Below are positions 28,169-38,206 of a stretch of DNA of 64,000 bases, piece by piece (the first letter of the stretch is position 1; every line of letters starts with the position of its first letter). This stretch comes from Rebecca billardiae RCC1528 (taxonomy: Eukaryota > Protista > Haptophyta): NCBI GenBank assembly GCA_965240325.2, contig OZ251249.1, positions 806,001-870,000 of the forward strand, given 5' to 3'. Both the position numbers and the translations under genes were made by a program. A model generated the notes under the pieces. That model was not told the DNA's origin. It made no database searches and was given only the letters and a program-made list of their open reading frames with translations.

Positions 28169-28536
28169 GCGCCGACGCCGCCGCGCAGCCCGCGGCGCGC
28201 CGACGCCCGCCGCTCGCGCGCCCGCCGCCGCGCGGCTCGCCGCGACGCGACAGCGCGGCCGCGCGCACTCGCGCGGACCGCCCACGCGCCGCCTCCTCAG
28301 CTGTCAGCATCCGCGCTTCGGCATGGCTGCCCGGCCCAGCGGCCCGCTGGCGCAGCTGGCGCTATGCCGGCGCCACTCCGCGCATACGGCATAGGTCGTG
28401 GGCGCGGCGCACGGCTTCATATTGACCCATCGGTCGTCCCGCGCTGCCAGTGGGCCGGGGGCGGGGTGGCGGCCCGGTCCGGCGGGTCTGCGGCGCCGCG
28501 TGCCGCGGCCACGACTACGACATGCAGCGGCATACA

Positions 28537-30457
<1,921 letters not shown>

Positions 30458-30556
30458 ATATATATATATATATAATATTATTGCGCAATAATAATAAGCA
30501 TATCAATGATGATATATGCTGGTATACGCGTATGATACGGGAGCTCGGACTCTGAG

Positions 30557-33500
30557 CAAGGGGCTTACAAAATATATATATACTGGAATAACTGGGGGCA
30601 AAACACAGCGCTGTCGTCGGATGCGATGTACATGATGAGACGGAAAGTGTCCGGCTATGTGCGAATCAAGGCACAGCAACGACTTCGATCTTTTTTAAAG
30701 CGGCCGTTAGCGTGTCCATCGGCCGGATTATTTTACGGAAAATTACTATGCGCTGCGCGCGCGCGCCCAGCGGGCGGCGCGCGCGCGCGACTAGTCCCCC
30801 CTGCATGCCCTAACCGTCAGCTGCCTGATTCCCGCTACCCAGCCCCGCTGCCGTCGCGCGCGACATCCGCGCCGTCGCTCACCGTCGCCGAGGCCGAGCG
30901 CGCCGCCGCCCTCAATTTGCTCTTGAGTGCCGACAAGTCCTCCTCCGGAAGCCCAGCCTCCTCGCGCACGAGCTTGCGCGCCGCGATGTACTCGTCGACC
31001 AGGTCGTGCGCGCCGGCCTTCGCCTTGCGCTGCCATTCGCGCTGCCGCTTGCCCTCCTTCTTCAGCCAGAGCCGCCGCACCTTGTCGCCGAACTCCTCCT
31101 CCGCCCACGTCGCAAGCGACACGCGGCGCAGGAGCTGCGCGGCCGTCGAGATGTGCGGCTGCACCGTCGACTTCTTCCCCTCGGCATACTCGCGGACGAA
31201 CGAGTCGAGCGACTTGCGCGCGTTCACGAGCGGCATCGCCCGCTTGGTCACCTGCACGAAGTGCTCCTGCACCTGCTCGTCCGCGAGCTGCACGAGGTGG
31301 CCCCACCGCCTGATCAGCAGAGGCAAGACGAACCGCGCGATCGTCTTGTACTGCGAGGTGACCGGCTTGAGGACGAACAGGTCGAGCGCCTCGACCCACG
31401 CCGTCGCGGCTGCCTCAACCTCGTCCGCACGCTTCGCGCGGCCATCGTCATCGTCCGTGTAGCCGCGCGAGGAGACGAGGTCGTGCAGCTGCCACGTGAG
31501 CATGAGCAGGCGGCAGAAGAGTGCCATGCGCGGCATGTCCGCGATCTCGGCCTTCAACTGCGCCTCGTCGTCAAAGCCGATCTCGTCCATCATCTCGCGC
31601 TCCTCCTCGTCCTGCATGTCCGAGATGCGCGCGTCCTCGTCGCCGCTGTCCGCCGCGCCCGCGCTGCTCGCGCCGTCGAGATCCGCGTCGATCTTCCACA
31701 CGACCTGCACCAACGCCCAGAAGACCGCGTGCGTGCGCAGCAGCGAGATGCCGTCGCCGCGGAGGTCGGGCACGCCGATCTCGTTGGTGCGCGTGCGCCG
31801 CTTGGGCACTCGCACAGGCACGCCCGCGTTCTTGAACAGGACGATCAGGTCGTACTTGGTGAGCGGCGCGTCGCGGCCGTACAGCTCGTCCACCTCCCTC
31901 CACAGCGCCGACAGCACCGGCTTGAAAGTGTCGTGCTTGAAGTGCATGATGCCGGGGAAGTAGTTGACGTGCTCGAGCTCCAGCTGCGGTAGCAGCCACT
32001 GGTTCTCGTGCAGCTTCTGGTCGACGATGCGCTCGGCGTCCTTCGAGTCGTCGGCGAGAAGGCGGCGGCGCTTGGTCATCTCGGCGTCGCACTCGCCCTG
32101 GTCGGCAGGCGTGACCTTGCACGCAGGGCACGTCACGCCCGGGTCCGCGTGGCACAGCGCGCGCGCGCGCTTGTACGTGCGCAGCCGCCACTGAGGCGAG
32201 CCGCCGTCCGCGCCCGCCTCCTTGACCGCCCACACGTTGAAGCGGAGCGGCGAGACGTTGTGCGAGCCCTGGCCGGCGAGGCTGGCAAGGTTGACATAAT
32301 CGCCGGTGTACGTGATGATGGCCTTCTGCTCCTCCGCGTAGTCGGCCGCCTCGCCGCCGCCGCCAAAACCGCCGCCGGCCGCGCCGCCCGCCGCGCCGGC
32401 AGCGCCGGCCGCGCCGGCCGCGCCGGCCGCGCCGCCGGCCGCGGCGGCCGCGGCGGCCGCGGCGGCCGCGCCGCCGGCCGTGCCCGCGCTCGGGTTGCCA
32501 GCCGCGCTGCTCGCCGCGCCGCCGGCCGCGCCACCGGCCGCGCGGACGCCAGCGCCGGCGGTGCCGCCAGCCACGCCGCTGCCGCTGCCGCTGCCGCCCG
32601 CGCCGCCCGCGCCGCCCGCGCCGCCGCCAGCGCCCGCGCCCGCGTTACCAGCCGCGCCGCCGGCAGCGCCGCCGGCCGCGCGGACGCCAGCGCCGGCGGT
32701 GCCGCCAGCCACGCCGCTGCCGCTGCCGCCCGCGCCGCCCGCGCCGCCCGTGCCGCCGGCCGTGCCGCCGGCCGTGCCGCCGGCCGCGCCGCCGGCCGCG
32801 CCGCGGGCCTCGCCGCGGCCCGCGCCGCCGGCCGCGCCGGCTGTGACGGCCGCGGCCGCGCCGCCGGCCGCGCCGGCCACACGTGCGGTGGCGGCAGCAG
32901 GCGGCGTCGGTCGCGGCGGAAGCAGGCCGCTCCGGATCACGTCATTGATCGCGTCGGCGTGCGCACTCCATAACTCGGACATGTCCGAGTCCGGCCGCTC
33001 CGAGATGGCGATCGCCTCTGACGACGCGAGCGCGCCGTAGTTGACGCCCCAGCCGTTGCGCACGATGGCGATCGTGGCCGTGCGCGAGTGAGCCGTGTTG
33101 CCCGCGTCCGCCGAGAGGAGGAGGACGTGCGGCTGCCCGCGCGGGCGCGCGGACTTGCCGTTGCGCTCCGAGCGATCCAGCACGGCGTGCACGGCCTGCG
33201 CCCACGGCCGCGCCGCCGACTCGCTGCCGATCATGAGCACGCCCGCGCCCGCGTGCTCGCGATCGCGCTGCGCGACCTCTCGAGAGCCAGCCGCCGGCGG
33301 CGGGATCGGGTGGCGGATCGGCTCGCGGCCGAAGCCGCCGCGGAAGACGGTGCGAGCCGAGTGCTCGCCCGTCACCGGGTGGATCTCCTTCCCCACCCAC
33401 TCGCGCCACGTGTCGAACTGCGCGTCCGTGACGTTCTTCGAGACGAGGTAGCCGGCGACGTCGTGGTGCGTCTGATGAGATTGAATCTCGCGCACAACGC

Positions 33501-36500
33501 CCACTGCGCCGCGGCGCTGCTGGAGGTAGGCGTGCCTCGCCCACGGCTTGCGCGAGCCGTCGTCTGCGCCCTCGAGCATCTCGTGCAGCACGAGGTCCAT
33601 CACGTCGTCGGGCGTGCCACGCAGGATGTGCTCGATATGGTCCGCCTCCCCCCGCCTGCGCTTGCGGCACGCGTTGCTCGAGACCGAGAGAGATGGGCGC
33701 TGAGCGCGCTGCCGATGAGCGCCGTCCAGCCCGTTCAGCTCGGCGAGGTGCTCGAACTTGCCGGCGGCTCGGTCGGCGCGCTTGCGCGCGGCGTCCTTGT
33801 CGCGCTTGAGCTCGACAAGCTGCGACTGCTGCTCGTCGCAGAGCGACTGGGCGTGCGCGCACTGCTGCTCGAGCAGCTGCTGCGCGTGCAGCGCAGCCGC
33901 GAGCTCGTGCTCGACGCCGCTCAGCGCGTCAGCGGCGATGTGCTCGGTCGCGGTGAGGCGGCGCTCCAACTCGAGGGCCCGATCGCGCTGCGCGTCGGCG
34001 GCGCGCTGCGCAGCTGCGGCCCGCGCGTTCGCCTCTTCGAGATCGCGCCGAAGCTTCGCCTGCGCCTGCTCCGCCTCGGCGTCGTGGCGGGTGCGCGCAT
34101 CCGCGCTGTGCCCGGCGCGGTACCCGGCGAGCACAGCGCGCCTCTCCGCGGCAGCACCGGCGGCGCGCGCGGCGGCGATCCGGTCGAGGGCCTCGCGCTC
34201 GATGTTCTCGCACTCGAGCTTGACGGCGGCGATCACCACGTCGAGAACCGGCTCGAGATCGACGGCGGCCGAGTTGACGATGTCCTCGCGCTGCCGCACC
34301 GCGTCGTCGCGCTCGCGCTCGAGCTCGCCGTTGAAGTGCTCGAGCTCGGTCACACGTGTGCGCAGCGAGGTGAGCTCGAGCTCGGAAGGGACGCTGCGCG
34401 TGCTGTGCGAGCGCCGCAACTGCTGCTCGAGCTCGGCCACGTGCTGCAGCTCGGCCATGCGCCTTCGACCCCGTGCTGTCTGCTCGTCCGCCTCTGCCTC
34501 GGGCGTCGGCGCCACGCTGCCAGCCGAGCGCGTGAGAGGCCGCTGGCGGGTGGGCGCGGCCGAGAGCAGCACGGCAGGCGGCGGCGACATGAAGGCGGGC
34601 GAGGCGACGGCAGGTGACCTCGGCGGCAGCAGCTCTTCCGCCGACCCACCGACGAACGGCTGCGCCGCCGCGCCAGCGAGGAGGAGTGGCGGCGCGGGCT
34701 GGCGGGAGGCGCTGCGCGTGACCGCGGGCGACGGCGCAGCGGCAGCAGGAAAGCTCAAGGCGGAGGAGGCGTTGGTAGTGGCGGGCGAGAAGACGAGGTG
34801 GTCGGCGTGAGCGGGAAGAGACGAGAAGCGGGCAGCGACGACGGCGGGAGACAAATCGGCGGCGGCGGCGGCGGCTGATGCCGCCGCCTCGCCGCCATCA
34901 GCTCGAAGGAGAGCGAGCGCGCGCGCGGTCGGTGGACGGGCGGCATCATGCGGCGAGGACAGCGGCTGCGGCTGCGGCCGCGGCCGCGGCCGCGGCCGCG
35001 GCTGCGGCGGCTGCACGAGCGGCGGAGGCAGGTGCGGAGGCGCCGACGGCAGCTGCGGCGGTGGCGGAAGCGACGGCAGCGGCGGCGGCCCCAACGGAGG
35101 CAGCGGCTGGGTGTCCGCGACCGCGTAGGGCATCACGGCGGCGGACGATGGATCGAATGGCGCGTCGGCGCAGAGGCCGGGCGTGAGACCGAGGACTGGA
35201 ACATGCGAGAGAGGCTGAGAATGAGAATGCAGATGGGCATGCGTGGGATCGAGGGCAGAGAGATCGAGGGGGGGATGCGGCGCGACCGCGCCGTCACCAG
35301 CTGGCGCGCGACGCCATCGGGCGCTGCTCGCTGCTCGGCGAGTGGCGGTCAGCTGCTCGCGCTGCGCGCGGCGCGCTCTCCAGTCCGCGCGCTTGCGCCG
35401 TGAGACGTCGGACTCGGGCGGCGCCGCCGGTGCCGCCGCGGCGGGCGCCGCGGCAGGCGCTGCCGGCGGCGCGCCCGTGAGCTCCGACGGGCCCTTCGTC
35501 ACAGACGGCGTGCGCCGCCAGCCCCGCCTCCGCCGCGGCGCATCGAGACGCCCTGCGCGCACACCTTGAGCAGCTCGCCGCTCACGTCAGCGCGCCCCTT
35601 CTCCTTCTTGAAGCGCCATGGCTGCATCAGCGCGTAGCGCTCGGCGTCGACGCTCACGCCGCCCTGCGCGTCCTGTGGCGCGTGCAGGCCGCCCTGCGCG
35701 TTGAGCGAGATCACGCCCACGCGCACGTGCGCGAACTGCTGGTACGCGCCGTCCGGATCGAGCCGATGCATCTCGGTGTGCTCGATCGAGAGCGAGTGCA
35801 CCGTGTTGATCGCCGAGAGGTGCCGGTCCGTGCGCGCGCCGCCGAGCGCGTTCGCCCGCAGCGGCTTCGGGACGCGGCGCATGCCCAGGTTGAGCCACGT
35901 CGAGATGCGCTCGGGCTGGTACGAGCTCACGGTGCGCCGCGTGCGGTCCTTCTCTCGCGTCTCGTGCACGACGCCCTGGTCGTCGAGCGAGGTGAACATC
36001 GGCGAGTAGAGGGCGTCACGCGGGAACAGCGCCAGCTTGGCCTTGCGCAGCAGGTTGCCCTTCTTCCGGCTGCCCTTGATGGCGACGAAGTTGTTGACCT
36101 TGCGCTTGACCTCCGCCAGGTAGTTCTCGTTCGGCATGATCGAGTGGTCCACCTCGCTCGCCGCCTCGCGCGCGCGCAGCATGAGCGTCTCGTGCTCAGC
36201 CGCCTTCTCCGCGGCCGCCGCGGCCATGCGCCGCCGCACAGATGCGGCAGAGACCTTGCGCCCGATGCCGTAGCCGCCCTTCCGCTGCAGCTTGACCTTC
36301 TTCGGCTTCGCGCAGGAACGCTTGCCCTTGCCCACGGTAAGCACAGCCGTCGTCATTGCTGCGCGCGGCGAGCGCGGTCCCGCGCGGCCGTGCCGGGCGC
36401 AGCCGCAGCAAGTTAGTCTGATGCAAATTCCCGGTCACCCATGCAAAAGTAAGCGTTCCCGCTGAGCATGTGCGTGGATCACGAGTAAGTAAAACCCGCC

Positions 36501-38022
36501 GCCTGAATACAAACTCCGCGCCCCTCCATACACTTCCTGCATCCCCGCGCGCGGCGGCGTGCAGGCGGGCGCAGATTCGCACCGTGTTACGAACAGACCT
36601 AGCAAAGTAGATCGGCGTGGCGGGTCGGGACGCGGAGCGGGTGCGGGGCAGGTGGGGGATAGGTTGGGGAACACCCGCGATTAGAGCACCGGTGGCGCAG
36701 CGGCGACGTGGACGCCGCCACACGCGCACGCACGGCGCACGCGCGCACCGGGACTTTCAACTTCGCGTCGGAGCTCTGAACGACCGTCGGTTGGTCCGAG
36801 CGGCGCGAGGAGGCTCTCGGGATTGTGGCCGGACGCCCGGGTTGAGCCGTTAACGGCCGAAAATCAATTTGTTGGAGTTTCCTTAACGGCCGCTTTAAAA
36901 AAGAAATCGTTGCTGTGGGCCTATATGGCCGGCCATGACCGATGATATTGGCCGCTAGGCGGCCATGGCCGATGGTTAGCGGTCGACCATCCATCTCTGG
37001 CCGATGGGTATTGGCCGATGGCCGTCCGTACTCGTAGGCCGCGCCGGACGGCACGGCCACGGCGCCGGCGCGTGATGGCCGCGTGAGCACGCCGCGCGGG
37101 CTGCAGCACTGCCACTGTCCGACTCTGCACGGTCGTAGTTCGAGAGGGCGGCCCCGGGGCTCGGCCGACCCAACTGGTGGACTTGTTGAGCCCCAGTGGC
37201 GGTCTCGACCGAGCTTGGCAGGTGTGTGTGTGTGCCTGTGTGTGTTAATCTGATATACTATATCAGTTACAGGCGACTATGTCTATATTGCGATGTATTT
37301 GCCGATTATGCGCGCCGGCCCGGCGAGTGAAGGACGCGAGGTGCAGCAGGCGGCGAGCCCGGCGAGACTCCGAGGGCGAGTCAGCGGCCGCACCCGCGCC
37401 CGCGACCGCGCCCACGCCCGCGCCCACGACCCCTACTTCTGCCACGGCTCGCGCTTGCACTGCCAGCAGCGCTGCGGCATCGTCTCACGCAGACCACGTC
37501 TGCCGACGCGGCGACTGCGGCAGCCTCGCGGCGAGCGGACGAGCGGTGGCTGCCGCAGCACAGTAGTCGGCTGCAAGCAGCTTCTGCGACGAGATCATGC
37601 CCAGACAGAGTCAAGCCGACCTCGTTGGGGTACCATACGTTCTGCCCGAGTGGTGAATAATCTTTTGCCGAAAAAGAAAAAGGGATGAATGAATATATGT
37701 ATATTCATTTATGCATTTATTCGTCGTAGTCGGCCACTGGCCGATGAACGGGCAAAAGTGGGCATCCTGTGGCCGACGGGTTGGCCGACGCCCGTCGAGG
37801 CTTGATTCGCACACAGGTGTCCGGTCAGCGGAAAACACTGTGCGCGAGAAGTTTGAATCCGGGAAAGCGGGTAGATCTGTCGTGACCTCATTACTTCTTC
37901 CCAGGCATTCCTGTGTTTTCCTCATACGAGCTCCCGGACACTTTCCGTCTCATGTACAAGTCGCATAGACGGGGTTCCTCACTTGGCGCTTTCGCCCCCA
38001 GTGGTATTTTGTAAGCCCCTTG
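30557..38022 (-). mobile_element. Apparently intact 7466-bp TIR DNA transposon with 7-bp TSD CTCTGAG
   Basis: Perfect 18-bp TIR CAAGGGGCTTACAAAATA (30557-30574 / 38005-38022) with further imperfect inverted homology to ~30654 / 37934. CTCTGAG at 30550-30556 and 38023-38029. Encloses a DDE-like gene. Confidence 0.9.
30835..36356 (-). CDS. Putative DDE transposase, ~1816 aa if the predicted intron 35494-35564 is spliced
   Basis: Candidate catalytic motifs VLLLSADAG (D ~33107), YTGDYVNLASLAG (D ~32300), PGIMH, LIRRWGHLVQLADEQVQEHF (E ~31265); CH..x..CPAC metal site; coiled coil. The 285-aa and 1575-aa ORFs join in frame at AAG|GT...AG|GGC. Confidence 0.7.
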
Positions 38023-38206
38023 CTCTGAGCATCCGCCGGTCGCGACGCGCGCGCGCGCCATGCATGCATGATGACCCGCGTTTTATTATTTAGAATTATT
38101 TAATATTTAATGGCAGGCGCGCCGGTAGTCGCGTATATATATTTTTATTATTGTCAAAAAATTTAAAAGGCGCTGGCGCGGCGGATCGATGATCATCATT
38201 GATCAC

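Follow-up and report, generated by a model that had tools for sequence, protein, structure and literature searches.

A probable new transposon lineage with a predicted RAG1-type core and a 7-bp target-site duplication in the haptophyte Rebecca billardiae

The window analyzed here is a 64-kb stretch of the Rebecca billardiae RCC1528 genome, and at 30557-38022 it holds a 7466-bp element bounded by terminal inverted repeats (TIRs), with a duplicated target site on either side, and carrying two long open reading frames, ORF A and ORF B, on the reverse strand. We regard this element as very probably an autonomous cut-and-paste (class II) transposon that forms a new sequence lineage within the CACTA/EnSpm-Mirage-Chapaev-Transib (CMCT) assemblage, with a DDE catalytic core of predicted RAG1 type and a target-site duplication of 7 bp.

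The left TIR lies at 30557-30574 on the forward strand and begins CAAGGGG, and the right TIR lies at 38005-38022 on the reverse strand and ends CCCCTTG. As the original prediction had stated, these 18-bp repeats (CAAGGGGCTTACAAAATA) are an exact inverse pair. With up to three mismatches allowed, the window contains no other match to the 18-mer, and shuffled sequence gives an expectation of 0. Directly outside them stand two identical copies of CTCTGAG, at 30550-30556 and 38023-38029, again as originally described; the chance of a 7-bp match at these positions is about 6e-5. Two other readings of the boundaries were considered. A flanking base C on each side permits an 8-bp duplication (CTCTGAGC), which had already been mentioned as an alternative, though solely with asymmetric ends, and it also allows the inverted repeat to be extended by one base (G...C) without a matching duplication. 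The symmetric reading, with CA...TG ends and a 7-bp duplication, is the simplest.

Further inverted repeats are found just inside the TIRs. A subterminal 20-mer is present at 30635-30654 on the forward strand, 78 bp inside the left end, and at 37934-37953 on the reverse strand, 69 bp inside the right end. A 12-mer (GTGCGAATCAAG) is similarly paired, at 30659-30670 on the forward strand and 37801-37812 on the reverse strand. Each of these repeats has just two copies in the window, inverted and near the two ends, and because both are arranged in this way, the two ends appear to belong together. The 20-mer is a possible binding site for the transposase. A scan of the window for further elements with TIRs and duplications, or for foldbacks, gave GC-rich or (TA)n noise only.

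Most of the element is taken up by coding sequence. ORF B spans 30835-35586 on the reverse strand, with its stop codon at 30835-30837, and is open over 35586-30838 for 1583 codons with no internal stop, or 1575 residues when counted from the first GTG. In it, the catalytic core is preceded by a low-complexity stretch rich in Pro and Ala and by a charged helical stretch, the latter present in all long homologues. Upstream, at 36356-35502 on the same strand, ORF A encodes 285 residues from an ATG and is probably exon 1 of the transposase gene. The G+C content at third codon positions (GC3) is 0.84–0.94 across ORF B (0.90–0.94 in its catalytic part) and 0.95 in ORF A, whereas the 1.67 kb at the 5′ end has no periodicity, and both frames are therefore clearly coding. 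This 5′ region (36357-38004, reverse strand), in which no codon periodicity was found, would hold the promoter and leader. It contains a cluster of TGGCCGATGG-like motifs at 36930-37030, spaced about 30 bp apart, and another copy at 37781-37796 near the right end; these motifs could be promoter or binding-site repeats.

The original prediction described one uninterrupted gene of about 1816 residues. This does not hold for the coding sequence, as ORF A and the 1583 codons of ORF B overlap in different frames. The two are probably joined by one short intron. A predicted GT-AG intron of 92 nt at 35494-35585 on the reverse strand, with its donor GTGAGC at 35585 and its acceptor AG at 35495-35494, would link the two ORFs in phase 0 and, by frame arithmetic, yield a protein of about 1809 residues; an alternative acceptor AG at 35483-35482 is also workable. 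In the gene model of the homologue from Pavlovales sp. CCMP2436, both parts are fused across short GT-AG introns that have a GTGAGA donor and an AAG acceptor. This gene model, together with ORF A-like sequence lying upstream of the core in two related loci (L003 and L008, described below), makes the predicted intron plausible. ORF A itself resembles the N-terminus of the family protein P0027 (E = 9e-5), the upstream ORF of L003 (E = 0.024) and the sequence upstream of the core in L008 (E = 1.5e-4). Judged from these similarities, it is a conserved N-terminal domain.

The overlap of ORF A and ORF B in different frames can also be read as a real frameshift that leaves no functional protein, in which case the element would be a broken gene or a dead relic. 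In keeping with such a relic, no RNA run was found to contain the element. We nevertheless think decay unlikely. Extreme GC3 is kept in both frames, the 1583 codons of ORF B contain no internal stop, and the TIRs and duplication are perfect. The canonical GTGAGC...AG intron restores the frame exactly, and the Pavlovales gene model fuses the same two parts. Moreover, the N-terminal domain of L003 is a separate upstream ORF, so separate expression of the two parts would be viable as well. The perfect ends and duplication and the open frames instead suggest a recent insertion and possibly current activity of an intact transposon, and when the host-like codon bias is considered alongside them, they point to the recent insertion of a family that has long been resident.

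The catalytic region corresponds to ORF B residues 640-1575 (30838-33645, reverse strand), on the basis of an AlphaFold model and of residue conservation. Counting at each position only those homologues that cover it, and numbering residues by ORF B, we found a set of strongly conserved acidic residues. D819, in the motif S-x-D-A-G, is conserved in 16 of 16 sequences, and D1088, in G-D-x-x-N...G-x-G-S, in 19 of 20. A third motif, S-Q-Y-x-T...P-x-L-I-x-x-W-G...N-E-Q-x-Q-E...K, contains E1429 (24/26), E1433 (22/25) and K1440 (21/25). The candidate catalytic codons are thus located on the reverse strand at 33108-33106 (D819), 32301-32299 (D1088) and 31278-31264 (E1429/E1433). The model places D819 within a beta strand and D1088 where a strand ends, with E1429 and E1433 at the start of a helix. 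This predicted placement of the two Asp residues and the Glu pair is the one needed for an RNase H-type DDE site. Between D1088 and the Glu pair are further conserved positions, namely C1145 and C1148 in C-P-x-C (20/22 and 19/22), H1185 in H-x-N (18/23), H1207 and H1210 in G-[VI]-M-H-x-x-H-N (19/21 and 19/22), and R1276, which is invariant (27/27).

The core is interrupted between the first and second catalytic Asp by an in-frame, Gly/Ala-rich low-complexity insert of about 185 residues (32344-32898, reverse strand). The insert is microsatellite-like in sequence and is predicted to be disordered, with a predicted local distance difference test (pLDDT) score below 35 over model residues 250-434. 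At the position of this insert, a Cys cluster (LPCC..C.C) is found in most homologues, the distant relatives P0004, P0027 and P0037 among them. In the window copy and its closest relatives the position is a low-complexity linker, which is expanded in the window copy.

To compare the core with solved structures, AlphaFold2 was used to model ORF B residues 640-1575 on a 40-sequence alignment. The model has pLDDT values of 80–97 over model residues 130-250 and 435-900 and a predicted TM-score (pTM) of 0.63. A replicate model was built for P0043, an MMETSP transcript whose product is 25% identical and does not have the Gly/Ala insert (pLDDT 74, pTM 0.73). When the element's own model was searched against the PDB with Foldseek, the top 35 matches were all RAG1, the amphioxus RAGL protein (BbRAGL) or HzTransib, with a best E value of 6e-3 and a probability of ~1; these scores are diluted by the disordered insert. 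The P0043 model gave 34 matches at E ≤ 1e-3, every one of them RAG1 or RAGL, with a best E value of 4.5e-6, followed by HzTransib at 4e-2 and Hermes at 6e-2.

The same ranking was obtained with VIA-align, an aligner independent of Foldseek, against 48,161 PDB representatives. RAG1 scored highest, with Z = 16.5 for the element's own model (421 residues aligned to RAG1 482-1029 at a root-mean-square deviation of 4.5) and 15.1 for P0043, and was followed by BbRAGL (15.9 and 14.7, in the same order) and HzTransib (10.6 and 10.3). Lower scores were found for the P element transposase (6p5a; 8.8 over 307 aligned residues, and 9.7), ISCth4 (7.6 and 8.2), Hermes (6.9 and 7.7) and Tn5 (6.0 and 8.4), and retroviral integrases reached Z of about 7 with the P0043 model. 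The modeled match to RAG1 is robust, covering nearly the whole RAG1 core and standing well above the P and hAT enzymes. The core had originally been proposed to be RAG1/Transib/Chapaev-like and not P-like, and an AlphaFold model compared by Foldseek with RAG1, HzTransib and P had been suggested as a check. Both models bear this proposal out: the predicted fold is of RAG1 type, RAG1 and BbRAGL match best, HzTransib comes next, and P and Hermes are far lower.

Searches of the ESM Atlas extended this comparison to predicted structures. With the P0043 model, the closest shapes were unnamed eukaryotic clusters whose commonest labeled phyla are Streptophyta (TM-score, for template modeling, of 0.63) and Cnidaria (0.61). 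Next came clusters of CACTA/EnSpm (Transposase_21; 0.53–0.56), DUF1280 (0.53), RAG1 (0.53) and Plavaka (0.52). The element's own model placed the same unnamed and DUF1280 clusters on top, and a search by features returned these once more, together with RAG1 clusters.

At the level of sequence, the protein stands apart. Pfam, whose models cover THAP, hAT, KDZ, CACTA, Plavaka and RAG1, gave no match for ORF B as a whole or in three pieces, for ORF A, or for any of the 33 family members; the lack of a THAP domain reported in the original prediction is thus upheld. Searches of PDB sequences with the protein and with a 40-sequence family profile returned low-complexity noise only and no RAG1 or Transib chain. 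An exhaustive HMMER search of 1.84 billion representative proteins turned up 33 relatives, most of which are fragments, with 16 reaching E ≤ 1e-10. Those that can be named are KAJ1620815.1 and KAJ1618320.1 from Pavlovales sp. CCMP2436 and a number of MMETSP transcripts, and the others derive from contigs of JGI, ENA and Logan. Because MMETSP transcripts are among the matches, relatives of the element are evidently expressed. Word-indexed protein searches found a single match with the C-terminal half, P0001, and nothing with the family alignment or with ORF A, and a search for related loci with a five-sequence alignment yielded four short metagenome loci, one of which was already known. Judged by these searches, the family is a lineage both rare and undescribed, and its occurrences to date are in algae of the Pavlovales, in transcriptomes of marine protists and in metagenomes.

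P0001, from NCBI assembly GCA_046766215.1, is the closest relative, at 68% identity. Its locus (L002) has about 175 nt of 3′ untranslated sequence in common with the window (L002 2082-2260 and window 30660-30834), including TAACGGCCGC.TTAAAAAA and TCGTTGCTGTG, after which the two diverge completely. A complete relative of 5957 bp, L003, was found in JGI metagenome 3300017818 (contig Ga0181565_10011449, 444-6400). It has perfect 33-bp TIRs beginning CACTGC and, upstream, an ORF like ORF A, and its transposase is divided between two called genes. Of the other loci searched for TIRs and duplications, the Pavlovales locus (L001) is interrupted by N gaps, and L008 is a decayed copy in which convincing ends were not found. 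One further candidate, L011, was rejected as a relative, having 38% GC and no homology. Two metagenome proteins, P0007 and P0004, seem to run on into an unspliced intron that falls between NEQV and QE, exactly within the catalytic motif, which points to an intron position conserved in some relatives; the window copy has no intron there.

Several points weigh against our placement of the element. The evidence for the fold consists of predicted models built from a shallow 40-sequence alignment, and the comparison spans few superfamilies, given that Novosib, Kolobok, Academ, Sola and Zisupton/KDZ are without a solved structure. The DDE and zinc assignments are putative, being drawn from conservation and secondary-structure position, and the His pair is spaced H(2)H about 220 residues before the Glu, where RAG1 has H(3-4)H just before it. 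The 7-bp duplication is known from a single insertion, the one copy examined, and L003, the sole complete relative, has no clean duplication (flanks ...atcatca / atctgct...). In addition, the intron is predicted from sequence, and mobility of the element would likewise be read from features of its sequence.

Given that RAG1 and BbRAGL are the best matches among solved structures, one might take the element for a true Transib or RAGL transposon, directly related to the V(D)J recombinase lineage but with an altered target stagger. There is precedent for parts of this explanation, as the duplication has been reported to range over 5, 3 and 2 bp within a Transib lineage (bioRxiv 10.64898/2026.08.26.747230) and a pelagophyte alga is home to a RAGL transposon (PMC9435367). 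However, Pfam matches to RAG1 are absent throughout the family, and a PDB search with the family profile recovers neither RAG1 nor Transib chains, while the divergent Transibs that have been described are still recognized by sequence methods (bioRxiv 10.64898/2026.08.26.747230). The CACTA and Plavaka clusters of the Atlas also match the shape of the core as well as RAG1 does, the ends lack a CAC heptamer, and a RAG2-like second gene is absent. We therefore hold direct membership of Transib or RAGL to be quite improbable.

The length of the duplication alone would also admit hAT7 and Kyakuja (KDZ), which are other 7-bp superfamilies, and Kyakuja elements have CA..TG termini (PMC12730594). We consider an origin in either group very unlikely. 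Hermes, the hAT transposase in our comparison, scores only Z 6.9–7.7, the hAT dimerization domain (PF05699) has no match, and Atlas clusters of DUF659/Dimer_Tnp_hAT are weak for the element's own model (TM-scores of 0.27–0.32) and absent for P0043. For Kyakuja, there is no KDZ match in Pfam and no KDZ cluster among the shape neighbors, and its elements are without TIRs, in contrast to the perfect 18-bp TIRs seen here. Least credible of all, and in our view barely worth entertaining, is a P/Galileo superfamily member with a very divergent transposase: it would account for the 7-bp duplication and CA..TG ends, and the P transposase is a detectable if weak structural match, but with both models the RAG1 score is about double, over some 110 additional residues, P element chains are absent from the Foldseek top 50, no THAP or P-related Pfam match was found, and the CMCT clade has CA..TG ends just as typically (PMC12730594). 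The ends were originally called P-like, and the CA..TG termini and 7 bp on which that rested are indeed present, but because such termini are typical of CMCT itself, they need no P-element explanation.

If the element is a CMCT transposon as we propose, its movement can be outlined. A single gene would produce a transposase of about 1800 residues, made up of the N-terminal domain, a low-complexity linker with the charged helical stretch, and the catalytic core. The core would have an architecture of the RAG1/Transib type, in which an RNase H-like DDE domain contains a large insertion that is helical and binds zinc, and would use D819, D1088 and E1429/E1433. This protein may bind the 18-bp ends together with the subterminal 20-mer and 12-mer, and may dimerize, with the charged helical stretch that precedes the core as a possible interface. 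Cutting would occur exactly at the CA...TG termini, and excision would probably involve hairpin formation on the flanks, as it does for RAG, Transib, hAT and CACTA elements. The two 3′ ends would then be joined to target phosphates staggered by 7 bp, and repair would produce the CTCTGAG duplication.

The insertion site is an AT-rich island in a genome that is otherwise 70–85% G+C, and (TA)n tracts occur in this island around the element (28500-30550 and 38030-38150). A second putative element lies at 28707-30457, about 100 bp from the transposon. Low-GC islands recur in the window at 2–3 kb, 16–17 kb, 19–20 kb and 28–31 kb, and they look like preferred landing sites for mobile DNA. In one public run (Logan contigs, 2024), short pieces of the element were found over 31268-35220, several of them without any difference, as well as one joint that skips 31310-32190; the contigs of this run do not cover the element junction. 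The run may be the assembly's own sample, and for that reason it is not counted as independent support.

V(D)J recombination descends from RAG1-fold transposases, and the diversity of these enzymes outside animals is poorly charted. The element described here adds an intact and possibly active member from a haptophyte, one that the sequence methods run here link to no described family. As its duplication falls outside the 2–5-bp range taken as diagnostic of CMCT, duplication length becomes a weaker classifier. For the question of what determines the distance between the two active sites on target DNA in the RAG1 fold, the element provides a natural comparison.

Among known systems, the element can be set apart from several groups by its duplication. 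Novosib usually makes duplications of 8 bp, Kolobok of TTAA, Academ of 3–4 bp and Sola of 4 or 8 bp, and the 7 bp seen here differs from each. P and Galileo elements do make 7-bp duplications. The element shares with them CA ends, a duplication in the 7–8-bp range, and a DDE core of RNase H type that bears an insertion domain. Unlike the P element, it has no THAP domain in ORF A or ORF B as judged by Pfam, and its structural match to the P transposase reaches only Z 8.8–9.7 over about 310 residues.

The likeness to the RAG1, RAG-like (BbRAGL, AanRAGL) and Transib (HzTransib) transposases is far more extensive, with about 415 residues aligning over the pre-RNase H, RNase H, zinc-binding and C-terminal regions (RAG1 482-1029). 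At the same time, identity in these structural alignments is just 10–13%, no Pfam RAG1 domain is detected, and the element has no RAG2-like partner gene, no CAC heptamer and no 12/23-type asymmetric ends. Its ends are instead CAAGGGG...CCCCTTG, and its duplication is 7 bp and not the 5 bp of Transib and RAGL.

The closest fit is with the CMCT clade as a whole, whose members have a DDE triad accompanied by two Cys and three His residues, mostly CA..TG termini, and duplications of 2–5 bp (PMC12730594). The element likewise has CA..TG termini and a predicted fold near those of RAG1, CACTA, Plavaka and DUF1280, and its candidate DDE residues, two Cys and three His are conserved in almost all homologues covering them and may correspond to the residues of the clade. 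It departs from the clade in its 7-bp duplication, a length that is absent for CMCT from both PMC12730594 and bioRxiv 10.64898/2026.08.26.747230, and in its H(2)H pair far upstream of the Glu. It differs from the described members in that no sequence-level match was found, and in its long N-terminal extension with a conserved domain of unassigned fold. The candidate new lineage of the original prediction therefore stands at the level of the sequence family, which matched no described family, and does not stand as a new kind of transposon, since the element is a new branch of the recognized CMCT assemblage. It may further represent, as the founding autonomous element, a new lineage of superfamily rank among RAG1-fold transposases, one with a 7-bp stagger.

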